Shown here: one piece after another, positions 32,601-64,000 of the stretch
How positions within the stretch are numbered: the first letter of the stretch is position 1
How the letters are laid out: every line of letters starts with the position of its first letter
Origin: Fimbriosthenelais zetlandica
Taxonomy: Eukaryota
Assembly (NCBI GenBank): GCA_977030845.1
Contig: OZ365110.1
Location: forward strand, 45,012,001 to 45,076,000
Reading direction: 5' to 3'
DNA length: 64,000 nt
The notes under the pieces: generated by a model
The model's input: the letters and a program-made list of their open reading frames with translations, nothing else
Told to the model about the DNA's origin: nothing
Database searches by the model: none
Program-made: the position numbers and the translations under genes

Positions 32601-35600
32601 AATGTATAAAAAGACTGGAATGGTGCTGGGTATTGCGAGTCCCTTGATTGCCTGGGATATTACTGCCTTCGTGAGGAAAACGTTTTCGCTGCCTTGACAG
32701 GACAGTATGGTTGTAACAGCAATGTCCTAAAAACTAAGAGCCAACCGCGTTATTAAATAAATGCTGAAACACCATAGAATTGGCAATGCCTGTAATAGTA
32801 GGTCAACCATAAGTTGAATCCCTCTTTTGCCCCATGAGCAGTATCATGTGAGTAGAGGATCTGGCCAATAGGCCTGAAGATTTATTCATTAATCCTCGAT
32901 ATACAATGGGTCAACCCCGATAAAGCTCTTCTTCATTGTTGGCCAGGATAGGATGGATCTTCTGGGACACCAGCAGGGCATAAATCGAGCACAGCTAGGA
33001 CGCATTGGTTTATCAAAGCTGTCGCTTCGTCCAGTAATGGCTCCATCGCTTTTCTGGCTTGACCTTTCTTCTTAGGCTTCCTTTTGTGAAGAGGTTGGCA
33101 CCATTTTCTATTGTGCCTACATGGGAGGGGAGGTCCACCAGTCATAAATTGGTCACTTAGTTCCCGGCTGGCAGAGGGATGAACATTCATATCTCGGGCA
33201 CCTTTGCTTGTCTGATAGCATTCTATCTTGAGGAATGTATAGCCTCCCAGAGAGAAAACTTAATACCCATAATGAAAGGTAAGGAGACAAGAAAAAGCCG
33301 GAAAGATGTCTGTGGTGAGGCGCCTAGAATTGCCCTTTTAAACAAGTATAGCCATATGACCTAGCTGCTGGATTTTGACAAAAGCGACAGATTTGCTGGT
33401 TAAATTCCCGAATTTTATATATAGCCTTGGCTGCGATTGATTGCTAGGGTATGATTGCAGCTCCTTGATGATATGCTAGACGCTCTTTCATAAAAAAGAA
33501 TGGCATTAGGTGATAGACATAACATGCATTTTTCATGAAACAGCACCATAGATCTTCATCATCAGACAATAATGAGATTCTATATTGCCTCAAACTTCTA
33601 TAGGGTTAACATGTATACCTTCATTACATTGTAATCTCCAGATCCTAACCCCACTTCCATTTGTTCCCCTAATTGAACTGTAAAAGCAAATTGAATGAGT
33701 TATCATTCATTTTGAAAGGCAATAATTTCGTTGGTGTAGGCCTTTTAACGATACCGGTAAAAACATTGAAACGTTCATTTAATGCTAGACGTGGATGCAT
33801 AGGATTTTATGGCCTAACAGCTGTAATTCAAATTAATGCCACTTTGTTCCCATCAAAGGATAATGGTGAAAATAGCAGGGATAAAATCAGAAGTTCTCCT
33901 TGTTTAACAGTGATGTATTTGTAGTCACTAGAAAACTTTTTATCTGTCATTATTCATGAATGACAGATAAATCAAGCAGTAGAGAGAACTAGGGAAAACG
34001 GCATGTTAAAGTCCCATTATGAAGTCATGTGACAGGAGTGTAAATAATGGGGCTTCCTTCACTGTTGGCTTGTTATCTTTTTATCTGTGAAAAGCTTCAC
34101 ACGGTAAGCTTATGAGCTGGTTCCTAAAATTTAACCAGAACACTCATAACTAGCCATGATATCTATGTCGTAAAATATTCGATGATATTTAAATTGATCT
34201 AATTGATATGGGTGAAATTCTTTCAGGTCCTAGAGGAATACATCAAGGTGATTGAAGAAGAAAGTATCCGGGACAACTTTGTGATAATCTACGAGCTACT
34301 CGACGAGTTGATGGACTTTGGGTATCCACAAACAACAGACACGAGCATTCTACAAGAGTAAGTCCTTCTCTCCTTCTCCGCAATTACTTCCAGCAAGTGT
34401 TCCTTCCTCTAATTGCTCGTGTTCTACTCTAAGCAGCCGGATGCCGGTCCTCAATCTGTAGCGTTTATGTTGTGACAAATGAAAGGCAGCTACTATGGCC
34501 CTTGATAAATGACCCATGACATTTACGTGGGTTACCAATAGTATAGAATCCTCAAGGTTCATTTTGCAAGGTTTCCTCAGAGGAAATGCTAATTAATGGT
34601 AATAGTTTTGTCCGGAATAAATAAAGGTCTGAATGTCTTTGAGTGGCAGAGTTCTCTTCCAATAGGACCTACATTTTTTTTAAAGAATACTTCCCTGTTT
34701 TTGCGGAGCCTGTTAGAATTTATTTTCAAGAAGAAAATTACATTCAATGAACCCAAGGAGTTTGATTAAGTACCAAATCCCTTTCATTAGGCAAAGAACA
34801 GTGGAAAGAGCATCAAGGTGATTTCATAAGAAAATCATCGCCTTTTACTGGCGGCTTAGTCTTGGACAAAGTGCTGTCAATCGCTTCACAGACGATTTGC
34901 CTATTTGAGTCATTATCCTAGCTTCAGAATGGTTCGTACTGGCTGTAAATGGCCGTATTACCACTCATAGCTGGCTGTTTAAGACAACATTCACCCAATA
35001 TATATCTTCTACAGACTCCATTCCTCCGTCGCTGAATTAAATGAGCAGCTCCCAGTCCTAAAAATAATGTGAATCGATTTTGTGGCCTATACTCAAATCC
35101 ATTCACTTCAAGACGCCCAGTCGAAATATCCTATGTACAGAATGGAAGAATGTATCACATTTCTGCGTTACATCCAGGCAAGATTGGTCCTCGCAGATCG
35201 ACTCTTGGCACACGAAGCATTGGTTATTCCTAATGATCAATGTAATTAATGTTCCAATACTCGCTCCCCACTCTATAATTGTACCCCGAGACAACCGATT
35301 TTGTCCGGGAGATGTAGTATTGGACTGGTCTCCAATCCAGAATAAGTAGTGCCTATTGATACTTGTTGGCCATGGGATCACTTCTGGCTGGCAATTAATC
35401 TGTCCCGTAAAACAACCATTCAATGTGCCTGTCTTTCGTCTAATCCCAAGCCTCCTAGGCCTGCTGCAGTTATCTAGTTCATCTAGTATTAATCCAAAAG
35501 CTGATGTTCAATGCCTGGCTCTTGTATCACTTGTTGCCCAATATATTTGCAGGTATATCACTCAGGAGAGCCATCGAATGGAAGTTGGGGCTCCCAAGCC

Positions 35601-38600
35601 TCCGTCCACTCTTACAACAGCAGTTTCATGGAGGCCCGAAGGTATTGAATACAAGAAGAATGAAGTCTTCCTGGATGTTATAGAGTCCGTCAACCTACTG
35701 GTAAGTAAACCTCATTCATTTTCAATGCATGTCCAGATTCCTTCACGGCCTTCATTCTGTATCAGTCTTGAGCTTTTACATCTTCATTTTTTATACATTG
35801 AATGATCAAAAGCATTGGTCCCTCATTGCCAACAACTAAAACAATTTTGATCTGGCCATCTTTGAGAGATGAAAATACATGATGAGAAATGTACATGTCT
35901 GCTAAATTGCATATATGTACAAAAAAGAGGCGGACCTAAGCACATACATGCCATTACCCTCTCCATACTTTAATAGGGGAAATGCCTTTATAAATATAGC
36001 CTACATATATGAAGCAATGCATTTGCCTTCCCACAGAGAAGTTGTGCACGGACCCTATGTATGCTGCATTCGCTAAAAGGTTATGGAAGTATGAGTCAGC
36101 CAGTTAGGGCTTAATGTGTTCATACTCCCGCTTCTCCCTTCAGCTTTATGTAATATGCATTAGGTACATACTTGTAGGCCTACTAGCAGGATCGAGGTGT
36201 TCTTTCATGAGAAAAAAAGTTAGGAGATACGCACCTCCTAATGCTATATTTTCTATGGGAAAAATAGCTGTGCATCTTTAGTGAAAAAGGCCCTGAAAAG
36301 CAGGAGCTGCAACACAGGCAGCGTGATCATGGGTGATCCAAAACAGGGGTCTCAGACGTGTAGCAGAGTAGGAATTATAGTTAATGTAGGCTGGTAGATA
36401 TCACTAATGTAGGTGTCGCTGGTGTTCCGATATACAAGAACCCCACACTGTAATTGAATCATGTCAGCAGGGCAAGCTGCTATTGATGGATGAACACCAA
36501 GTCAAACGTGGGCACTGCCCGCATTGAGCGTTGGGTTTGTTTATAAACTAGCCAGCGTGCCCCAGGAAAAAAAACCCCTACAGCAAGGTCAAGAAAGCAT
36601 CTCAGCCAATGAGTTACTCAATTACAGCCTGTGAGAAACTCATTTCAGGCGGAGCCATTAGCGATGCATGGATTCTAGCGTTTTGGGGACTAGCCCTTTT
36701 AGGGGCATGTTAGGGAGATAACTTCTTCAGCCGCCTTGTGTATTTATTTTAGATCCATCAGGGAGGGGACCTGTCAGCAGGCCCTCCTGGTCAAACCATT
36801 CACTCCCCGCCTTCCTCTGTGAGACAGTAATTGATTCTGGACAGTTTAGAGAGGCTCGGGTTTGAATCTGAAAGCCTCTCTTGAAACTCAATTGTCTCCC
36901 TGCAAACACTGCTTAGCTTGTCATCCTTTATTGAATTGCTGAAAAGTGGAATTCTATCCAAATGTTTTACAGCACCCGAAGCAAAGATATATTTAGTCAT
37001 TTTCTATAGTCATTTTCTCCATATTTATGTTCTGAAAAAAAAACTGTTAGTCATATTCTAAAGGGCTCCTTCGCATTAAGCAATGAGGTCAAATTGACCG
37101 TGCATGAAACCTATAATCACCTATGTCCATCCAATTTAAATGAAATTACTCCCATCCAACATTGCTCGTTGGGATTGTGGCTATACATGTCCGCAAAACT
37201 GTTAATAATTCATGTGTCAACCAATATACTTATATCATGAATGTCAATAAGCCAACGGGCAGAGAGATCCATCTAGTGATAGAGTTTGTTGGAACATTGA
37301 ATATTTTATAATTATACCTGGAAATAGATCCGATCTCTCCGAAATATGGTTTGAATTATTTGCAATTCCTTGGGGAATGATCTTGCGTTTTTCTTTCTAT
37401 AATTTCCCTCACAATTGAAAATATATTTTTGGTCTGGAGCAGGGATTGCACCAAGTGGAAATTGAAATTAAAATTGTAGCTTATGTAACTTCGAACAGTG
37501 CGTATTGGGTTACAATGTCCAAAGTGTATACTAAGGTGGGCTATATGAATGCATGCTCTATCCTTTCTTATGGCATTTCCTGTGCCAATATATAGAACAG
37601 TAAGGGTGTCAATTCCCTGACGTATCCTTGTATTAAGCAAGCAATTGTTTCAGCACCCATTATTGATTTCCATTTAGTGATGAAGGCCAGTGATAACCTT
37701 ATATTATCTCCACACTCGCCAGGTGAGCTCGGCTGGGAACACGTTACGGAATGAAATCAATGGGACGGTTCAGATGCGGGTACAGCTAACAGGCATGCCG
37801 GAACTACGGCTCGGCCTCAATGACAAGGTGCTTTTCGAAAACACGGGACGTAAGTAAAGCTCCTTTAATATGACCTTATACAACAGCCATGCATTGACAA
37901 ATTATATTTACCTAATTCATCTCATTCAAAGGATCTTTTCAGATATAAAATAGCCGTAAATATAAAGTTCCTTCAATATGAGGACTCAATGGGAATGTAT
38001 GGTAATATGACTTGTAGGTATATATTGGATTTGTATGGGTATTGTTCTGCAGTTTTATAGTTATGCAGAAATGAAATTGAACACTATTTCAAAGTTTCAT
38101 TGAGCACAATATGATCTGACTTTTGAAACTTGTCATGTTCGTATAGAACTGTTACTAAAAGCAGAGGGCTGACTCTGCACTTTCATAATGCTGAACAGCT
38201 TCTATTTTTCATGAAATACTGAATGATGCATGGAGTTCTTGTAATAAATCTAGCAACAAAATATGCAAACCTGTCAAACTGGTCAGCAATTATACATGTA
38301 TAAGCCTATTTGAATAATTATCTCAGTCTAAGACTACCGGCATATTTTCTATATTCGGATACAAAAATCTAATGAAAAATGTATGTAAATGGGCAGCTAT
38401 AGGCATACGTAACAGGTCCAATAGGATTTCTGGAGTATACAATAGTACATAGTGCTTTCCACCCGAGCGGGCTGACTTTAAGTCTTCTAGCTTGTATAAT
38501 GTCTAATCTAATAGCACTCTAGCTACAGTAGTTCATCTCAATTGGATTGCGTTTGTCTTATAAAGATCGTCGCCTATAATGAAAACAAAAAACGACGCCA

Positions 38601-49781: not shown

Positions 49782-50019
49782 GTATAATTCATTCATCTAT
49801 TGAATAGATGAAGAAATTGTTTCAACCTTAAACTTAATATATAGAAACTCAACATTAAAAGAACATGAAACGAACGACCTGAAACCGAACTGGAACATAA
49901 GTATAATTCATTCATCTATTGAATAGATGAAGAAATTGTTTCAACCTTAAACTTAATATATAGAAACTCAACATTAAAAGAACATGAAACGAACGAACTT
50001 AAACCGAACTGGAACATAA
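49782..50019. repeat. 119-bp tandem duplication in the XPF 3' UTR
   Basis: 49782-49900 and 49901-50019 differ at 2 positions by eye. Confidence 0.92.
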
Positions 50020-50334: not shown

Positions 50335-53300
50335 CTGTTATTGAATTAAAAAATAGACCAATCAGATTACCGTACTTGGTACCGGGTATACTGAATAGGA
50401 AATAGTGATAATCCTTAATAGAATAGAAAGATTAAAAGATCAGCTAGAGATCGTAATTATAAAAGCAAGCAACACTAATTTAGAGATCATAATTATAAAA
50501 GCAAGGAACACTTACCCGAGGTCCCTGGTTATATTTTTCTATGACCAATTCTGATTCTTCCTCCCCAGTTATTGCCATGGCTGCCACAGCATCCGGTTGT
50601 GGACGACCAGCCTGTTCACAGCAGAACAATAATATAATATTAACAAGAGTTAAAAGAAAGATGTACACAATGAAAAAAATCAAATTTATTACCAGAGTTG
50701 GTACACATAAAGTGTACACATAAATCAGAAAAAAAATCAACAAAACTTACCTTGATTTCTTCAAACAATTCAGCAGTAGCGTAGGGGCTCGGACACCACA
50801 GGATACGTAGTCGAGGGAAGTGCAAGGTTAGTAGGACAAGCCGAGATGTGACGTCATTGCTATTAATCTCGTTGGAGAGGTAATATTTACCCTGAAAAAG
50901 ATGCATCAATAAGTAGAATTTTTTAGAAGGCCAGCCATTAATAAAACTTTGTATAAAGGTGCATACTAATATACATTAAACGGAAAAGAACTAAATTTTT
51001 CAAAAAGAAATGTATTGATTCAATTTTCAAATACCAACCTGAAGGGTAAAAGGTTTGCTGGGATCAAACTCGATGAGGAGTATAGGTCTTTTGTAGTAGC
51101 GACACATGGCGGTGGCTTGGTTATACAGACGACCACTGTTCAACGATCCAATCAAATCACTCACACTTTTCCTCTCTACACAAATGTCAGGCGTCAGAAT
51201 ATAGTCACCAACCTAAACAGGACAAGTCAGTATGAGATTAAACTAAACAGGACAAGTCAGTATGAGATTAAACTAAACAGGACAAGTCAGTATGAGATTA
51301 AACTAAACAGGACAAGTCAGAATGAGATTAAACTAAACAGGACAAGTCAGAATGAGATTAAACTAAACAGGACAAGTCAGTATGAGATTAAAGTAAACAG
51401 GACAAGTCAGTATGAGATTAAAGTAAACAGGACAAGTCAGTATGAGATTAAACTAAACAGGACAAGTCAGTATGAGATTAAACTAAACAGGACAAGTCAG
51501 TATGAGATTAAACTAAACAGGACAAGTCAGTATGAGATTAAACTAAACAGGATAAGTCAGTATGAGATTAAACTAAACAGGACAAGTCGGAATGAGATTA
51601 AACTAAACAGGACAAGTCAGTATGAGATTAAACTAAACAGGACAAGTTAGTATGAGATTAAACTAAACAGGACAAATTAGCATATGTTTACAAAAACAGT
51701 TTAACGCCATAGACATTTTTCGCATCTAGTAACCTACCTCTATTGTCACTGGTTCAATATCAATACCTCGTGCGTGAAGCAAGGAAGGTAATCCACTACG
51801 AAACTCCCGCATGTCCACAATGACCTGTAAATAATCAAGATATTCAAATCTAGACATAACCCAAAATATCACTTAAAAAATACAATTATGTTCTCTACAT
51901 CTTCATATCATCTGGCTTCTTTTGAAAACAGAGCAACCTTTACCTTTTGTTGTTCCGGTTTCTGAGGAAGACCGCCCTTCCGTGTGTTCACAGTAGCATT
52001 GGCTGGAGTTGTGTCACGAGACAGGTTTGGATCATTGTCAAATCGACCTTCCCGCTCTTCAGGAATAACCATAGTCTAACAACAAAAATACAGGGTCTAA
52101 ATATTATCTTCCAGGAGAGGTGTTTACCAAATTTAAAATTGAGCAAAAAATCTTTTTAAGGAGATAATGAAAGCAACAGTTGCGACTATTCTTACCGCCT
52201 TTTCTCTTATTAAGAACTCGAATGCATCTTTCTCTTTCCGCAGCGTTGTTAGGTATCTTTGCTCCTCTGTGGATCCACTGTACATCAAAAAATAGACCCT
52301 CAGCGAATGATCAGGTCGTGTCGCCCGGAATACCTGACAGTAAATTTGTTTAATTAAGTTATTTTTTTTAAAGCCCATAACAGAAATTCAATGCAAGGAG
52401 GGGAGTTAGCTCAGTTGGTTAGAATGCCCGCTCACACATGGTGGTTGACCAATGATCGAAGGGTGGGCGGTTCAATCCCCTGAGCTATCCAAGGCTAGGG
52501 GTTGTACCGGTACATAATTATGTTCTAGAGCATATGAACCAAGAAATACCCAATATTCTAAGTAAAAAAATAATAATTTCAAAGGAATGATACAATGTTT
52601 GCCACTGACCTCCAGCTGCCTGACAAGACCCATATCAACATCATAGATGATGACATAACGTGGAGCCACCTCCTCCAGGGTCCGCCTGAAACCGTTGGGA
52701 TCCGAGGAGCCGTGGATGGGATGAAGGACAGTGAAGGGACACTGAAGGACGCCATAGAAGGCTTCCTCTGAGGGAATCCCGGACTCCCCCTCCCTCCCTT
52801 CCTATATAGTGGAAAAAATGGGTAAATTTGAGTATGGGAATGAGAGGAAGTTGTGAAATTGTATATTGAACTAGATTCGAGATTTATTTATACATTTACC
52901 TTATTTGGATCGTCCACCATTTGTGTCAGTGTTAAACCATTGTTGGATTGCATTGGTTTCGGTTTTGCATATTTCCCCCCAGGGAGTTTCGCCTAAAAAT
53001 CAAAAGACTTTGACTTTAGGTACCATATGATCAATTTTCAGCGATTTAAAGCTGATCGAATACAGAATTAAAGCAGACAATAAGTTTCCTTACCTGTACC
53101 TCTGGCAGAAGTCTTGCACCTGTTTTAAATCCAACAGTCTTGTTGAATAGTCGCCGCAGAAGGGCTTGTCCTCCATCACAAAGGAACTACAAATGCAAAG
53201 AAAAGTCATCAATACACAAATATATAAGGGTCAGATTTTTTTAACTAAAAGATATAATTTAAATAATAATTAAGCTGGAAACGGACCTCTTTTATTTGAT

Positions 53301-57659: not shown

Positions 57660-57930
57660 TGTAGTATTTTTAGCAAGGGCATTCCCAGTGACGTCACTGG
57701 TCAAGCTCAGCCAGAGGGAATTCCCTTGATACGCTTGACCAGTTCCCAGAATTCCCTCCCTCCACCTTGCGTCCCTAGATACAGGGAGTTGACATTTGGA
57801 TTGAGAGACATAAGGACGCGCCTACACTAAGACGATTCCCCAGCCTCCCAGCCCGGTTCAACCACCATAGCCTTTATATTCATACATCGACAGTCAGCAT
57901 AGTAAGTACCCATAGCGTCCAAGTATTACA
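57660..57930 (+). repeat. 5' LTR (271 bp)
   Basis: Starts TGTAGTATTT and ends AAGTATTACA (8/10 terminal inverted repeat), followed after 1 nt by TGGTGTCAG. The 3' LTR is outside the window, so the left boundary cannot be confirmed by comparison. Confidence 0.8.
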
Positions 57931-57931
57931 T

Positions 57932-57945
57932 TGGTGTCAGCAGTG
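57932..57945 (+). other. Primer-binding site, tRNA-Leu-like
   Basis: TGGTGTCAGCAGTG is complementary, with one mismatch, to the 3' end of metazoan tRNA-Leu(CAA/CAG) (...CACT[T/C]CTGACACCA, from memory). Confidence 0.75.
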
Positions 57946-58449
57946 ATTTTACTTTGCTGACTTTTTTGTTGTTGATGTTTTGAATTGTTGGTAAAAATCC
58001 CGGCTTACCGGTAGTTTACTCACCTGGATTACATTGGTTTAAGAATCCCGTTGAAAACGGTGCCAAATAAGGATTACCAAAGTGGATTTATGTGCATTAT
58101 TTTCATTATTTTCTACATTGATATTTTGCTTGTGCATGCGGTACTTTCCATGTTTGATGCATGTCAGTGAGAGAACTATTGCATTGTTGCCATTGTTGGT
58201 GTGACCATTGCCATACCGGCCTGGTGCGGCCAGGGTCACTGCTGTAAACCCTTTACGGTAATGACCGCACCATATGATGCCACTGAATCCTATTGATATT
58301 TGTCCCACTGTAATTTTCTTTCTGTTATATTGCCCGGAGAACGCCGGTGCTCCTCAGTAGTAATTTATGTTTCAAGCCATCCTGCCATTGCGTGGGCCTT
58401 CACAATAGCGCCCCCACCTAACTCATGTGACAGGGAGGGGGATAGGGGT

Positions 58450-59505
58450 AATAGTCTAAAAAAAATCCTTAAGGTGCTTCAGGCCTTTTGCGATAGAAAA
58501 ATCTTATTTTCTTGAATATTCCCGGACAATACCGGAGATAGAAAATAGTCAAAAAAATCCTTAAGGTTCTTCAGGCCTTTTGCGATAGAAAAATCATATT
58601 TTCTTGAATATTCCCGGATAATACGGCAGATAGAAAATAGTCTAAAAAATCCTTAAGGTGCTTCAGGCCTTTTGCGATAGAAAAATCTTATTTTCTTGAA
58701 TATTCCCGGACAATACCGGAGATAGAAAATAGTCAAAAAAATCCTTAAGGTTCTTCAGGCCTTTTACGATAGAAAAATCTTATTTTCTTGAATATTCCCG
58801 GACAATAACGGAGATAGAAAATAGTCAAAAAAATCCTTAAGGTTCTTCAGGCCTTTTGCGATAGAAAAATCATATTTTCTTGAATATTCCCGGATAATAC
58901 GGCAGATAGAAAATAGTCTAAAAAATCCTTAAGGTGCTTCAGGCCTTTTGCGATAGAAAAATCTTATTTTCTTGAATATTCCCGGACAATACCGGAGATA
59001 GAAAATAGTCAAAAAAATCCTTAAGGTTCTTCAGGCCTTTTACGATAGAAAAATCATATTTTCTTGAATATTCCCGGACAATACCGGAGATAGAAAATAG
59101 TCAAAAAAATCCTTAAGGTGCTTCAGGCCTTTTGCGATAGAAAAATCTTATTTTCTTGAATATTCCCGGACAATACCGGAGATAGAAAATAGTCAAAAAA
59201 ATCCTTAAGGTTCTTCAGGCCTTTTGCGATAGAAAAATCATATTTTCTTGAATATTCCCGGATAATACGGCAGATAGAAAATAGTCTAAAAAATCCTTAA
59301 GGTGCTTCAGGCCTTTTGCGATAGAAAAATCTTATTTTCTTGAATATTCCCGGACAATACCGGAGATAGAAAATAGTCAAAAAAATCCCTAAGGTTCTTC
59401 AGGCCTTTTACGATAGAAAAATCATATTTTCTTGAATATTCCCGGATAATACGGCAGTTAGAAAATAGTCTAAGGAAAAAAATCCTTAAGGTCCTTCAGG
59501 CTTTC
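58450..59505 (+). repeat. 92-bp tandem array (11 full units plus a partial 12th) in the retrotransposon leader
   Basis: The unit anchor ATCC(T/C)TAAGG recurs at 58465, 58557, 58649, 58741, 58833, 58925, 59017, 59109, 59201, 59293, 59385 (period 92) and 59482; decayed fragments extend to about 59620. Confidence 0.97.
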
Positions 59506-59646
59506 TTCGAGATATAAATCATTATCCCGGCTAATACCGGTGAATAGGACACTTCAAACTTAATCCTGACATAAAGCTAGTTAAAAAATAAAATACAAAT
59601 ATTCCTGGCTAAATACTGGGGAGGAAAACATTTTCAGATTTCCATC

Positions 59647-61632
59647 ATGACCGACGAGGCGATCAACATCAACTCCGCCACCGAGGAGGCTCTACAGAAC
59701 TTAAAGGATATTGGCCTCTCCCGAGCCAAGACCATACGACACTTGGTGGCTGATCATGGACCATTCATCGGGATGGACGACATGACGCGGGCAATAACCT
59801 GTGGGGTGAAGCCCCCAGACAATCGGCAGCTTGCGCAGGTATTGCTGATGCACTTCCAGTCGAAGCATATACACTTTAGATACGTCGGGTGCCAATCGGG
59901 GAGTGACGGGACTCTGAAAGAGGACCGCGACGCTACAGAGATCCTTGCCCTGCGGGGGGAAGTGTCCCGGCTGCAGCAATTGCTGTCGGCGAGCGGAGTG
60001 GAGGCCATGATTGCGGCTAACCAGCGGAAGACCAATGAAAATGCGGAGCTGGCCAGGGAGTTGGAACTAACCCAGCTCCAGCTGGACCGATCACGAAGGC
60101 CGGCTACCACATGTAGGGAAGCAGAAACATCCCAGCCCCCATCATCCACTGGAGGAGCGGCTGCGAGGACTGCGCTAGCAGGAGAGGGGATGACAGAGGT
60201 CCTGGACATCTTGGATCGATGGAATAAGGGACCTGGTCAAGGGCAGCTGGGAGAAATGCCTAAGGCAAAGCAACAGCGAAGACGGGGGCGGTCGCCAGAT
60301 GTATCTCCGGTGTACTCGACAGAGGATGACGGCCAGAGCCGGCACACAAGGCAGAAACGGGACCAGCATAAGCACCCATCGTCGAGAGTCCAAGGCCGAC
60401 GTGAAATGACCCGAGCCCCGGATGACCATAGGCGGCAAGACAAGTACCTGCACAGCAAATCATCCTCCAGGCGACAACACCACAGCAGCTCCCAGGGGAG
60501 GACGAGAAGGGACAGGTCCAGCTCGGAAGACCGGACTCACTCAAGTCGTAAAGGGAGATCCTCGAGGCGCTATACAACACCAGAAGACCCGTACCGACGG
60601 AGGGATTGCAGCCAGGACAACTCGACGTCTAGCACCGAGTCGTCAAGCTCCCAGAGCTCTGACTCCCCAGACCGGAGGAGGAGGTCCGGGGCACCCGGGA
60701 AGATCCCCACCTATGACGGGTCGACAAGGTGGGACACATACGAGGAGCAATTCCGCAGGATCGCGAGGAGAAACCACTGGAGGGACCGGAGGAGGGTGGA
60801 CATGCTAGTCCAAAACCTCAGGGGCGAGGCCCTGACCTACTTCACGGCTCTCTCCAAGGCCACGAAACGCGACTGGGAGAGGACAAAGCGCCGGATGAGG
60901 GACCGGTTTGGACGGGCGAAACCTCCAACCACCGCAAGGCGGGAACTACAATCCCTGAAGCAGGAAGAGGGGGAGGACTTGGAAAAATTCGGCCAGCGAT
61001 GCCTGGATGTGGCTAGGGAAGGGTTCCCCAATGACGGGGACAGGGTCATCCAGAAGATGGCTGTGGACGCCATACTACGAGGCTGTTCTGATTCCCGGGC
61101 AGCACTAGTGGCAGGGGAACGGAACCTGCACACTGCACAAGAGGCCATCCGGAGTCTCAAACACTCCATCCATAATGCCCGCTTTGTCATGGGCGAGAAG
61201 AGGGTCCGAGCAGTGACGTTTGCGGAGGGGAAGGAAGAACAGCCAGACCGGGGACCTAACAGTCGGCGCCCAGGGGGGAGTAACCTTCGCGACTCCACCA
61301 CACGGTCATCCCGGAACACCGGAGGGGGGGCGCACCTCAATCAAAAGGAGGAAAAACCGTCCACAGAAATGGCCCAGTTGGTCAAGGAGATGGCGGCCAT
61401 GAGGGAGTTGCTGGCAGGACTCGTCATAAGCACCGCAGGAACTGGCGAGGCAAGGACAAGCACCTCCAGGGCCCGGCCCCGCTCTCCAAGCCCCGGGATG
61501 GGTGGTTCCAGGAGCAACTCCCCAAGTGGAGTTTGTTTTCAGTGTTGGCAACCGGGTCATTTCAAACGGGATTGCCCAGACTTGCCCCGCCGGTCTTCAG
61601 CAAGCTCAGCGGGATCAGCGACGGAAAACTAG
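59647..61632 (+). CDS. gag: Gag polyprotein (661 aa): N-terminal ComEA-like HhH, coiled coil, RS-rich tract, capsid-like domain, CCHC zinc knuckle
   Basis: Intact ORF. KIPTYDGSTRWDTYEEQF...LRGEALTYF...LKQEEGEDLEKF is retrotransposon Gag-like; CFQCWQPGHFKRDC at 61534-61575. Confidence 0.93.
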   Translation: MTDEAININSATEEALQNLKDIGLSRAKTIRHLVADHGPFIGMDDMTRAITCGVKPPDNRQLAQVLLMHFQSKHIHFRYVGCQSGSDGTLKEDRDATEILALRGEVSRLQQLLSASGVEAMIAANQRKTNENAELARELELTQLQLDRSRRPATTCREAETSQPPSSTGGAAARTALAGEGMTEVLDILDRWNKGPGQGQLGEMPKAKQQRRRGRSPDVSPVYSTEDDGQSRHTRQKRDQHKHPSSRVQGRREMTRAPDDHRRQDKYLHSKSSSRRQHHSSSQGRTRRDRSSSEDRTHSSRKGRSSRRYTTPEDPYRRRDCSQDNSTSSTESSSSQSSDSPDRRRRSGAPGKIPTYDGSTRWDTYEEQFRRIARRNHWRDRRRVDMLVQNLRGEALTYFTALSKATKRDWERTKRRMRDRFGRAKPPTTARRELQSLKQEEGEDLEKFGQRCLDVAREGFPNDGDRVIQKMAVDAILRGCSDSRAALVAGERNLHTAQEAIRSLKHSIHNARFVMGEKRVRAVTFAEGKEEQPDRGPNSRRPGGSNLRDSTTRSSRNTGGGAHLNQKEEKPSTEMAQLVKEMAAMRELLAGLVISTAGTGEARTSTSRARPRSPSPGMGGSRSNSPSGVCFQCWQPGHFKRDCPDLPRRSSASSAGSATEN

Positions 61633-61683
61633 ACAGGGGGGGCCCCAACGGCCAACGGCTTCCCCCGGTATTAAACAGCCGTT
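61623..61683 (+). promoter_or_regulatory. gag-pol -1 ribosomal frameshift signal (G GAA AAC, 6-nt spacer, H-type pseudoknot)
   Basis: The heptamer is in the gag frame directly before the TAG. Stem 1 pairs GGGGGG 61636-41 with TCCCCC 61661-66; stem 2 pairs AACGGCT 61654-60 with AGCCGTT 61677-83. Confidence 0.8.
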
Positions 61684-63359
61684 CGAACCAGGACCCTCCA
61701 CCACCTCTAGAAGAAGGGCCAACAACTCCATCCTCGCCCGTGGGACAGCCACACTCAAAAACATCCAGCGAGGATGCCACCATCCGGACCATAAACTTTC
61801 GTGAAAACCAGGATCCGTTGGAGAGTTTGATCATCCCCGTCACGATCAACGGGACACCGGTTGAAGCGCTCCTGGACCTCGGCGCACAAGTCACCATCCT
61901 GAGCACTGCCTTTGTCGAGACAATGCATGACCCCCCACAGGCAACCGAGACCATACACTTGAAAGGAGCGGCCATAAACAGCTATATGGAGGCGACTTCC
62001 ACAGGACCCATCGCCATCCGCATTGGAGGGCACCTCATCACCTGGCCTGTATACATCGCGCCCATAACAGACCCCGTAATCTTGGGACTGGACTTTTTAA
62101 GAAGCGTAGACGCAATTGTAAACTTAAGGGCAGCCACCGTCACTATCCAGGGGGAGGACATGCCCGTTCTATTCAAACGCAACGGAGGGGAAAACTACCT
62201 GGTCACCCGTGTCAAATGCGCCAGGAAGATGTCTGTCCCCCCACACTCGGTGGCCTGGGTACCCATCAGTTTGACTAGTCTGCCGGAAGTAGGGGTTCCC
62301 CTTGTGTTGTGTCCGTCCAGTTGTGTTCCGGGCCTCACATGCCCCTACGCCCTGATAAATAATGGGAACCGGTCCTGGGTGGAACTCATTAACCTGAGTG
62401 GCCAGTATGTGACATGCGAGAAGGACCAATGCCTAGGCTCCGCTGAGCCGGTAGAGGAGGTGCAAGGGGACAAAGGTAAGTCATTTCAGATTCGGCGCAT
62501 CCTGGAACCGGAGCTGCAGCCCAGAGGTGCACCGATGTCTGAAAAAGACCGGGACTGGATGGCAGCTGGCGTCCCTGAGCACTTGAATGATCTGTTCATA
62601 AGATCCTCCTCCTCATTGTCCTCCGGACAGGCCAGGGATCTGGTTTCGGTCCTCAAAGAGTATCAGGCAGTTTTCTCGAGGGAGGATACAGATCTTGGAT
62701 GCTTCACTGCCATCAAACATAGGATCAATACTGGAAATGCCACACCCAGACGGCAGAGGATGCGCCGGACGGCACTCGGGTTCCAGAACGAGGAAGAGAA
62801 GCATTTAGATAAGATGCTGAAGGCAGGTGTTATCAAACCCTCGTCTTCACCCTGGGCCTCTGTTCCCGTATTAATACGGAAGAAGGACGGCTCGGTACGC
62901 TGGTGTCTTGACTATAGGGCGTTGAACGACGTCACAGTCAAAGACGCATTTCCTCTGCCAAGGATAGAGGAATGCCTGGACTCGCTGGCAGGGAGCCAGT
63001 ACTACAGTACCCTGGATATGAATTCAGGGTACTGGCAAATCCAGGTCGAGGAGTCCGACCAGGCGAAGACTGCCTTCATCACAAAGTATGGCCTCTTCGA
63101 GTGGACCCGCATGGGATTTGGCCTATGTAATGCCCCAGCCACCTTCCAGAGGGCCGTGCAACTTGTGTTGCACGGGATGCAATGGAAGAAGGTCCTGTCC
63201 TACCTTGATGATGTGGTGGTCATAGGGAGGAGCTTCACCGAGGCACGAGAAAACCTGAGAGAAACCCTACAACGATTCCAAGACTTTAATATGAAACTCA
63301 AACCGCAGAAGTGCAGTTTGTTTCAGAAAAAGGGTTTCAGTTCTTGGGTAGACTGGTAA
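61630..63359 (+). CDS. pol: Pol part 1: aspartic protease (atypical DLG) and reverse transcriptase, -1 frame relative to gag
   Basis: ALLDLGAQVTILS...ILGLDFL; PSSSPWASVPVLIRKKDGSVRWCLDYRALN; TLDMNSGYWQI; MGFGLCNAPATFQR; YLDDVVV. The frame is lost at about 63335 and stops at 63359. Confidence 0.93.
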
Positions 63360-64000
63360 CACCAGAGGGGGTGACCTTGGACCCGGGAAGTGAAAACACA
63401 ATCCGGGACTGGCCGCCCCCCACCTGTGTCCGGGAGGTGGAATCCTTTTTAGGGTTCGCTAATTACCACCGGGATTTTGTTAAGGGATATGCAGAGATTT
63501 CTGCACCCCTATATAGGTTGACCGGTCCAAAGGTGAAGTTTCACTGGCCGGATGAGGCTAACCAAGCCTTCCTCCGCCTGAAGGAGTGTCTACTGGATGC
63601 ACCGGTGCTCCCCTACCCAGATCCGGACTGTCAGTTTATCCTGGACTGTGATGCCTCTGATGTTGCTGTCGCGGGGGAACTGTCCCAGTCCATCGACGGT
63701 CAACTGAGGGTCATCGCCTATGGGAGCTTTGTCCTTACCCCAGAACAGCGCAAATACTGTACCACCCGCAAGGAGCTGTTAGCTGTCATAAGGCTTACTC
63801 GACAATTCAGGCACTACTTGCTGGGGCGACCCATCCTGGTTCGAACAGACCACAACAGCTTGACGTGGCTGATGGGGTTCAAGAGTGTGCAGGGCCAGCT
63901 GGCACGCTGGCTGGAAGAGCTATCGCAGTACGACCTGACCATTGTCCACCGTCCAGGGAAAAAACACATAAACGCTGATTGTCTATCCCGGATTCCGGAT
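63338..64000 (+). CDS. pol: Pol part 2: RT thumb/connection and RNase H, frameshifted, open to the window end
   Basis: Stop-free for 221 codons: QFLGRLVTPEGV...FLGFANYHRDFV...DCDASDVAV...RKELLAV...RTDHNSLTWL...HRPGKKHINADCLSR. Confidence 0.92.

Follow-up and report, generated by a model that had tools for sequence, protein, structure and literature searches.

The DNA-binding (HhH)2 domain of bacterial ComEA (PDB 8dss and 8dfk; Pfam HHH_3; TIGR00426) belongs to a membrane-anchored or periplasmic DNA-uptake receptor, which also has an N-terminal anchor and oligomerization part. In animals, EEPD1 (PDB 9yi2) carries two such domains, which are flexibly tethered, together with an EEP nuclease-fold domain. 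Isolated EEPD1 (HhH)2 domains do not bind DNA stably, and several copies are needed (PMC12988330). The kinesin KIF22/Kid (PDB 2edu), a single host motor protein with no relation to retroelements, has an HhH domain at its C terminus that attaches a non-DNA machine to chromosome arms. Among retroelements, murine leukemia virus (MLV) p12 and the foamy-virus Gag chromatin-binding sequence are parts of Gag outside CA-NC that fasten the incoming complex to mitotic chromatin. They are short linear motifs binding nucleosomes or histones, not folded DNA-binding domains. The chromodomain of chromovirus integrases is a host-type chromatin-directed module that was captured by a Ty3/gypsy lineage and kept as a lineage hallmark. 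It sits at the C terminus of integrase, reads histone marks, and directs integration site choice.

Here, a Ty3/gypsy-type element was analyzed in a window of 64,000 nucleotides from Fimbriosthenelais zetlandica (contig OZ365110.1). Its Gag begins with a ComEA-type HhH domain, so that a module of this kind is fused to a retroelement capsid protein in an animal genome. Only the HhH part of ComEA aligns with the Gag. In contrast to EEPD1, the Gag contains one HhH domain and no EEP domain. No sequence or fold relationship exists with the MLV and foamy-virus tethers, which would be functional analogues only. Compared with the chromodomain, the module is on Gag and would bind DNA itself. No published description of an N-terminal HhH domain in Gag, or of the DNase gene associated with it in related elements, was found among 8.4 million papers and preprints. 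However, the domain is already visible in public protein records, since CAC5415563.1 is automatically named "comEA [Mytilus coruscus]" and a UniProt entry is named "Helix-hairpin-helix domain-containing protein."

Sequence and predicted structure of the Gag N terminus

The preliminary description, which placed a ComEA-type HhH domain at residues 4 to 46 of the Gag, is confirmed by the present analysis, and these residues read exactly as given there. Pfam HHH_3 aligned residues 4 to 47 with 28.3 bits (E value, 1.9e-6) when residues 1 to 75 were searched alone and with 28.1 bits for residues 1 to 80, against a gathering cutoff of 27. In the whole protein, the score was 25.1 bits (E value, 1.8e-5), just below the cutoff. 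The NCBIfam comE model and the ComEA HhH repeat region gave E values of 5e-8 and 4e-6, respectively, with scores far below their whole-protein cutoffs in both cases. The protein is not a ComEA, since it scored 32.9 bits with the full-length family model (TIGR01259; cutoff, 152.35), with only profile positions 58 to 107 of 120 aligned. A phmmer search against PDB found EEPD1, which was the best whole-protein hit (E value, 3.6e-4), and two ComEA structures. The alignment with Bacillus subtilis ComEA showed the 16 identities stated in the preliminary description. At the level of the Gag family, ComEA shares the N-x-N-x-A cap, the L-x-G-I-G-x-x-[KR]-A hairpin, and the G-P-F motif.

The domain is small and soluble-looking, and it is confidently modeled by AlphaFold as four helices. 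Its best PDB fold match in a Foldseek search was ComEA (8dss_B), with a root mean square deviation of 2.7 Å, followed by KIF22; TEFM-N, PsbU, and Tex were also among the top hits. The caveats raised beforehand also hold. The first hairpin reads K-D-I-G, in which the second glycine is kept and the first is replaced. The second hairpin of this copy is not matched by the Pfam profile, as the match ends at profile position 47 of 65, and it has lower model confidence, with residues 55 to 57 below 50 in the model of the whole Gag. The domain has a slightly negative net charge, with 6 K+R against 8 D+E. This was rejected as an argument about DNA binding, since by eye the aligned ComEA domains look similar.

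In order, the Gag consists of the (HhH)2 domain, a long helix, a disordered linker, CA, and a CCHC knuckle. The features of the element are listed in the table, in which the related loci used for comparison are designated L001 and L003 and a related Gag is designated P0001. The Retrotrans_gag and zf-CCHC matches are above their cutoffs, and the ORF is followed by PR-RT, which identifies it as a Gag. The window ends at position 64000, after PR, RT, and the start of RNase H, and relatives that are 56% to 75% identical in pol show the order PR-RT-RH-IN. No canonical X-XXY-YYZ slippery heptamer was found in the gag-pol overlap (positions 61520 to 61640), and Rfam and tRNA scans of the window returned nothing and gave no indication of the primer tRNA.

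Features of the retroelement in the analyzed window (all on the forward strand)
Position	Feature	Gag residues	Basis
57660..57930	5' LTR (TG...CA, about 271 bp), inferred		Ends align with the 100%-identical LTR pairs of L001 and L003 (start TGT.GTA.T, end TTACA); the 3' LTR and target-site duplication lie outside the window, so there is no internal confirmation
57932..57946	Primer-binding-site-like sequence directly after the LTR, inferred		TGGTGTCAGCAGTG aligns with TGGTGCCAGGAGTC in L001 and TGGTGCCAGGCGTG in L003 at the same position
58367..59586	92-nt tandem array (about 13 units) in the 1.7-kb 5' leader		Repeat search; relatives have arrays of other unit lengths at the same place
59647..61632	gag ORF, intact	1-661	ORF translation; Pfam HHH_3, Retrotrans_gag, and zf-CCHC
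59647..59862	(HhH)2 domain (residues 4-46 at 59656-59784)	1-72	HHH_3; AF2 pLDDT 90.3, helices 13-17, 24-37, 43-53, and 58-71; Foldseek top hit 8dss_B, prob 1.00, TM 0.64
59917..60096	Long single helix (coiled-coil-like), predicted	91-150	AF2 model of the whole Gag, pLDDT 65-88; weak Kinesin_assoc hit at residues 91-146; relatives automatically named after coiled-coil proteins
60097..60681	Disordered Arg/Ser-rich linker, predicted	151-345	pLDDT below 50 over most of it; 42 K+R and 49 S+T in 195 residues; does not align with P0001
60682..61206	Capsid (CA) domain	346-520	Retrotrans_gag (residues 386-456); pLDDT 94-98; 43% identity to P0001
61531..61578	CCHC zinc knuckle (nucleocapsid)	629-644	zf-CCHC, E 3.6e-4, 20.9 bits, cutoff 20.8
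61533..64000	pol (PR, RT, start of RNase H), -1 frame relative to gag, cut off by the window end; one frame break between 63332 and 63341		Pfam aspartyl protease and RVT_1; tblastn with L001 pol gives two pieces in different frames, 56% and 75% identical

Distribution of the domain and of an associated TatD-family DNase

To investigate whether the domain is private to this copy, the 150 closest Gag clusters, which were the best of 5193 Gag relatives, were examined. In total, 63 of the 150 clusters carry the domain at the extreme N terminus, and among clusters that start with Met and have at least 200 residues before CA, the count is 61 of 82. Of 64 N-terminal pieces, 56 matched HHH_3, with a best E value of 1.2e-11. 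Across the 64 pieces, A11 is kept in 59, L16 in 62, G23 in 54, R/K26 in 49, and A27 in 51, while the first hairpin glycine is kept in 35 and missing in 29. In many relatives, the second hairpin reads G-[IV]-P...W instead of G-I-G. The carriers are spread over the whole capsid tree and lie on both sides of its midpoint root, which indicates that the domain is ancestral to a large, apparently undescribed Ty3/gypsy-type lineage. The interpretation in the preliminary description was therefore only partly supported: the module is of the ComEA/EEPD1/KIF22/Tex type and heads a Gypsy-type Gag, and its lack of a published description holds for the literature searched, but it is not a peculiarity or a recent capture of this copy.

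An artifact, either a chance similarity or a chimeric reading frame made by insertion next to a host exon or by misassembly, could be suggested by the whole-protein Pfam score below the gathering cutoff. However, this explanation is refuted by the presence of the same domain at the same position in 63 other Gag clusters from many samples, each in a single ORF with CA, in independent loci that also have LTRs and pol. Three close relatives have the full LTR-gag-pol-ORF3 structure, and the structure model is confident.

The named members of the lineage are all from Mytilus. Of 30 clusters looked up, the records other than those of Mytilus come from ENA, Logan, or JGI assemblies, including hydrothermal-vent and TARA samples. 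A word-index search with residues 1 to 90 alone returned no hit, and one with an alignment of 40 Gag sequences returned only P0001. A scan of JGI metagenome contigs gave 137 pattern matches, none of which was confirmed.

When the profile of the family was searched against PDB, ComEA scored 62.0 and 57.0 bits per domain, EEPD1 46.5 and 48.4 bits (E value, 2.7e-27 over two domains), and KIF22 32.2 bits, with the alignments spanning both hairpins. EEPD1 was also the best whole-protein hit of the family profile, and it is an animal protein and thus a possible host donor. However, the per-domain scores are too close, and the domain too short, to decide between a bacterial and a host source.

In addition, eight related loci (L001, L002, L003, L005, L006, L007, L008, and L009), which represent both major clades, encode a TatD-family DNase as ORF3 together with an HhH-containing Gag. 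The D-x-H-x-H, GE-x-GLD, and ETD-x-P motifs are intact in this ORF.

Inferred roles of the domain in the retroelement

The analysis establishes the domain's identity as a ComEA/EEPD1/KIF22-type (HhH)2 module, with its fold resting on a model, and its inheritance at the head of Gag in a large lineage of LTR retrotransposons that usually also encodes a TatD-family DNase, whereas DNA binding and every role proposed below are inferred. The explanation favored here, with moderate confidence, is that each domain is a weak, sequence-independent binder of double-stranded DNA (dsDNA), acting through the hairpin backbone and the conserved Arg/Lys-Ala that follows the hairpin glycine. The long helix behind the domain and the Gag lattice would bring many copies together and give avidity, consistent with the requirement for several copies in EEPD1. 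In Ty3, Arc, and retroviral capsids, whatever lies N-terminal to CA projects from the outer face. By analogy with these capsids, the domain, if it stays attached to CA after protease cleavage, would be displayed outward on a flexible linker of about 195 residues. From there, it would tether particles or preintegration complexes to chromosomal DNA, most plausibly when the nuclear envelope is open, as MLV p12 and the foamy-virus sequence do by other means and as the KIF22 HhH does for a kinesin. The missing first glycine and the poorly modeled second hairpin of this copy argue against this view, as does the fact that some proteins with this fold do not bind DNA, including PsbU and TEFM-N, a dimerization or interaction module.

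The fold may instead have been kept for Gag-Gag or Gag-host protein contacts or for RNA binding, for which XPF-ERCC1 HhH dimerization, PsbU in photosystem II, and the TEFM N-terminal domain are precedents. The relaxed hairpin signature, the altered second hairpin in many relatives, these fold neighbors, and the failure of isolated EEPD1 domains to bind DNA are consistent with such a role. However, it is considered unlikely, because the best-kept positions (G23, R/K26, and A27) are those of the DNA-contacting first hairpin and the residue after it, and because the closest sequence relatives, ComEA, EEPD1, and KIF22, are all DNA or chromosome binders.

The preliminary description proposed chromatin tethering, holding of cDNA, or shielding from DNA sensors, all of which remain hypotheses. 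In a further view, also considered unlikely, the domain holds the element's own reverse-transcribed double-stranded cDNA and works with the ORF3 DNase, for example, to protect the full-length product while surplus or abortive DNA is trimmed, which would keep DNA away from cytosolic sensors. The co-occurrence of the TatD-family ORF3 with HhH-containing Gag is consistent with this possibility, and since HhH binding does not depend on sequence, cDNA would be as good a ligand as chromatin. However, by analogy with Ty3 and retroviral capsids, the Gag N terminus lies outside the shell, while cDNA is made inside next to NC, which already supplies nucleic acid binding. An interaction between ORF3 and Gag is likewise only supposed.

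Speculatively, the HhH-containing Gag and the TatD-family DNase may together form a two-part DNA-handling kit that defines a previously undescribed, ancient lineage of Ty3/gypsy elements in marine invertebrates. In this tentative scenario, Gag displays dozens to hundreds of nonspecific dsDNA-binding heads on the particle surface, and the nuclease degrades either surplus cDNA, as TREX1 does for retroelements, blunting cGAS-STING-type sensing, or host or extracellular DNA met during entry. If true, this would be a retroelement strategy with no known counterpart in retroviruses or retrotransposons.

Mussel genome records currently name these Gag proteins "comEA," "interaptin-like," "CAST/ERC2," or "CFAP45-like," and such names could be misread as host genes or as bacterial gene transfers. 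Textbook Ty3/gypsy Gag is capsid plus nucleocapsid, and the known chromatin-directed modules of LTR elements sit on integrase or are short peptide motifs in retroviral Gag. A predicted folded domain of the bacterial competence type, kept at the tip of Gag across a large lineage, is different. Paired with an element-encoded TatD nuclease, it points to an unstudied way for retroelements to deal with DNA, whether by finding chromosomes, guarding their cDNA, or evading DNA sensing.

The N-terminal region of Gag and its similarity to ComEA-type domains

The 661-aa ORF of the window contains, in addition to its N-terminal region, a Retrotrans_gag capsid (CA) match (aa 386 to 456) and a CCHC zinc knuckle, and an overlapping ORF in the -1 frame carries an aspartyl protease and a reverse transcriptase, which identifies the protein as the Gag of an LTR retrotransposon whose 3' part is cut off by the window end. 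Residues 4 to 46 read exactly as they had been given in the preliminary description, and the observation made there, that Gag starts with a ComEA-type helix-hairpin-helix (HhH) domain, is confirmed. Pfam HHH_3 (PF12836) aligns with aa 4 to 47, with 25.1 bits (E value, 1.8e-5) in the whole protein and 28.3 bits (E value, 1.9e-6) for aa 1 to 75 alone, against a gathering cutoff of 27. The NCBIfam models comE (TIGR01259) and ComEA HhH repeat region (TIGR00426) match at E values of 5e-8 and 4e-6, respectively, although only their HhH part aligns and the scores are far below the cutoffs for full ComEA proteins. A phmmer search against all PDB sequences found EEPD1 (9yi2; E value, 3.6e-4) and two ComEA structures (8dss and 8dfk), and the alignment with Bacillus subtilis ComEA has the 16 identities given in the preliminary description.

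An AlphaFold2 model of aa 1 to 80, built with an alignment of 64 related N termini, has a mean pLDDT of 90.3 and four helices (residues 13 to 17, 24 to 37, 43 to 53, and 58 to 71). Its best fold matches among solved structures are ComEA (8dss_B; probability, 1.00; TM, 0.64; rmsd, 2.7 Å), followed by the KIF22 C-terminal domain, TEFM-N, PsbU, and Tex. Among predicted viral structures, only ComEA-like proteins of giant viruses were found, and no Gag. Two reservations in the preliminary description are correct for this copy, since the first hairpin is K-D-I-G and the second HhH is not covered by the Pfam alignment, with its hairpin being modeled with lower confidence.

Distribution of the domain among related Gag proteins

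A profile search of 1.84 billion representative proteins, using the window Gag plus its one close relative as the query, gave 5,193 hits at E values of ≤1e-3, of which the best 150 were analyzed. A locally iterated HMM of the N-terminal domain detected the domain in 63 of these 150 proteins, in every case at the extreme N terminus, starting at residues 1 to 40. Many of the other proteins are fragments that begin inside CA; among those that start with Met and have at least 200 residues before CA, 61 of 82 carry the domain, and several of the negatives look like decayed versions of it. When scanned one by one against Pfam, 56 of the 64 N-terminal pieces hit HHH_3, with a best E value of 1.2e-11. 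A profile of the 64 pieces matches ComEA with 62.0 and 57.0 bits per domain, the two domains of EEPD1 with 46.5 and 48.4 bits, and KIF22 with 32.2 bits in PDB, and the ComEA and EEPD1 matches run over profile positions 3 to 59, that is, over both hairpins. These family data exclude a chance similarity or a chimera.

The best-kept columns are A11 (59 of 64), L16 (62 of 64), G23 (54 of 64), R/K26 (49 of 64), and A27 (51 of 64). The first hairpin glycine is kept in only 35 of 64, so the K-D-I-G of the window is a common variant rather than a defect. Together with fold neighbors such as PsbU and TEFM-N, the relaxed hairpins suggest an alternative in which the domain has a role other than DNA binding, in assembly, protein contacts, or RNA binding. 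On a maximum-likelihood tree of the CA domain (140 rows), carriers lie on both sides of the midpoint root and in almost every subclade, and the window groups with the related Gag proteins P0001 to P0003 with an SH-aLRT of 98. The simplest reading is that the domain was present in the common ancestor of the whole set and has been lost, or mispredicted, here and there.

Organization of the elements and of Gag

The three closest relatives (loci L001, L002, and L003) lie on large contigs of one ENA assembly. L001 has 100%-identical LTRs of about 235 bp, 9.9 kb apart, enclosing a leader with a tandem array, gag (HhH-CA-NC), pol (PR-RT-RH-IN), and a 623-aa ORF3 with a TatD_DNase domain (E value, 7.5e-37). 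L003 has the same plan, again with 100%-identical LTRs, while L002 has the same gene order, although no LTR pair was detected there. The TatD ORF3, located between pol and the 3' LTR, recurs in further relatives, namely, L005, L006 (from a hydrothermal-vent metagenome), L007 (from the other major clade of the tree), L009, and L008 (from a TARA ocean sample, where it is cut by the contig end). Only one locus, for which no DNA was available, showed no TatD hit, and the window itself ends inside pol, ahead of this region. The ORF3 proteins keep the metal-binding motifs D-x-H-x-H, GE-x-GLD, and ETD-x-P and align with solved TatD-family nucleases. Ahead of the TatD domain, the two distant elements L005 and L006 share a C-x2-C ... 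H-x4-H zinc-finger-like motif followed by H-L-P-W-Y, whereas the N-terminal halves of the ORF3 proteins otherwise have no Pfam match. The association with ORF3 raises the alternative that the HhH domain holds or guards the element's own cDNA in cooperation with the TatD nuclease.

The 5' LTR of the window was inferred by alignment with L001 and L003, and a conserved primer-binding-site-like TGGTG(C/T)CAG follows it directly. The splice donor-like sequence within the LTR occurs at the same LTR position in L001 and L003, about 25 nt before the LTR end in all three elements, and together with the acceptor-like site of the window, it could mean a leader intron or a spliced mRNA for ORF3. The leaders between LTR and gag are 1 to 2 kb long (1.7 kb in the window), and their tandem arrays differ in unit length between elements. 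In the window, gag is intact, whereas pol has one frame break, beyond which the match to L001 pol continues in another frame. No canonical X-XXY-YYZ slippery heptamer was found in the gag-pol overlap, the only near-candidate being GGAAAAC just before the gag stop codon.

Coordinates of features in the window, in a model of the whole window Gag, and in related loci
Sequence	Position	Strand	Feature
Window	35356-35805	+	ORF whose residues 90-118 match the start of the adaptor-complex medium (mu) subunit family (32.5 bits; cutoff, 31.6); probably an exon of a host gene about 22 kb upstream of the element
Window	49782-50019		119-nt tandem duplicate
Window	51015-51650		Spurious 211-aa ORF overlapping the minisatellite
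Window	51090-51809		30-nt minisatellite, about 24 units
Window	57660-57930		5' LTR (TG...CA), inferred
Window	57902-57909		Conserved GTAAGTAC, splice donor-like
Window	58367-59586		92-nt tandem array (about 13 units) in the leader
Window	59631-59637		TTTTCAG, acceptor-like, 10 nt before the gag ATG
Window	59647-61632	+	gag ORF
Window	59656-59784	+	Gag residues 4-46
Window	61520-61640		gag-pol overlap (-1 arrangement)
Window	63332-63341		Frame break in pol, within RT
Window	64000		Window end, inside pol
Window Gag	aa 1-55		HhH domain, pLDDT about 80-93
Window Gag	aa 60-81		Helix, less certain
Window Gag	aa 91-150		Long single helix, pLDDT 65-88
Window Gag	aa 151-345		Disordered stretch, pLDDT below 50; 42 K+R and 49 S+T in 195 aa
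Window Gag	aa 350-515		CA, pLDDT 94-98
Window Gag	aa 571-597		Helix
Window Gag	aa 629-644		CCHC zinc knuckle
L001	9504-9812		Leader tandem array, 80-nt unit
L001	16575-18446		TatD ORF3
L002	8966-9583		Leader tandem array, 127-nt unit
L002	17738-19249		TatD ORF3
L003	9114-9918		Leader tandem array, unit of about 130-260 nt
L003	16232-17818		TatD ORF3
L005	7282-8778		TatD ORF3
L006	6977-8458		TatD ORF3
L007	9427-12018		TatD ORF3
L008	1754-8054 and 9303-15603		Two head-to-tail copies of an HhH-Gag element on one contig, each with an extra 143-aa ORF between gag and pol
L008	15715-16782		TatD ORF3
L009	2110-3837		TatD ORF3

The closest relative, P0001, has the same order of Gag parts as the window, with a canonical H-G-V-G hairpin and a Glu-rich, coiled-coil-like middle. 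Public annotation pipelines have named mussel members after coiled-coil proteins (interaptin-like, CAST/ERC2, and CFAP45-like), while one is named "comEA [Mytilus coruscus]" and one UniProt entry is named "Helix-hairpin-helix domain-containing protein."

Comparison with described proteins and inferred function

The domain is a member of Pfam HHH_3. However, the protein is not a ComEA, since it scores 32.9 against a cutoff of 152 and has no anchor part, and it is not an EEPD1, since it has no EEP domain. As far as the window allows, the element fits the criteria for a Ty3/gypsy-type LTR retrotransposon. Full-text literature searches found no paper that describes an HhH or ComEA domain in a retroelement Gag or a TatD nuclease in an LTR retrotransposon, although most subscription-journal papers and the Repbase and GyDB entries lay outside these searches and prior description elsewhere cannot be excluded. 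The only hit joining the terms concerns the unrelated helical hairpin of Caenorhabditis elegans Cer1 CERV. 

The analysis establishes the identity of the predicted fold, its position in Gag, its conservation across the lineage, and its linkage with TatD, whereas the function of the domain, including DNA binding, is inferred. (HhH)2 domains of this type bind the phosphate backbone of double-stranded DNA without sequence preference. In EEPD1, the isolated domains do not bind stably, and binding rises with the number of domains per assembly (PMC12988330); a Gag lattice, helped by the long helix, would supply exactly such multivalency. In Ty3, Arc, and retroviral capsids, sequences N-terminal to CA project from the outer surface. 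By analogy, the domain would sit outside the shell on a long flexible linker, from which it could reach host DNA but not the genome packaged with NC. We therefore favor, over the two alternatives raised above, a tether of particles or preintegration complexes to chromosomal DNA, analogous to MLV p12, to the foamy virus Gag chromatin-binding sequence, and to the use of the same fold by the kinesin KIF22. The interpretation in the preliminary description, of a captured module that tethers Gag or particles to chromatin, holds cDNA, or shields it from DNA sensors, is supported only in part, with its functional proposals remaining inferences. The domain is a captured, putatively DNA-binding module, but an ancient one that marks a whole lineage of elements together with a TatD ORF3.
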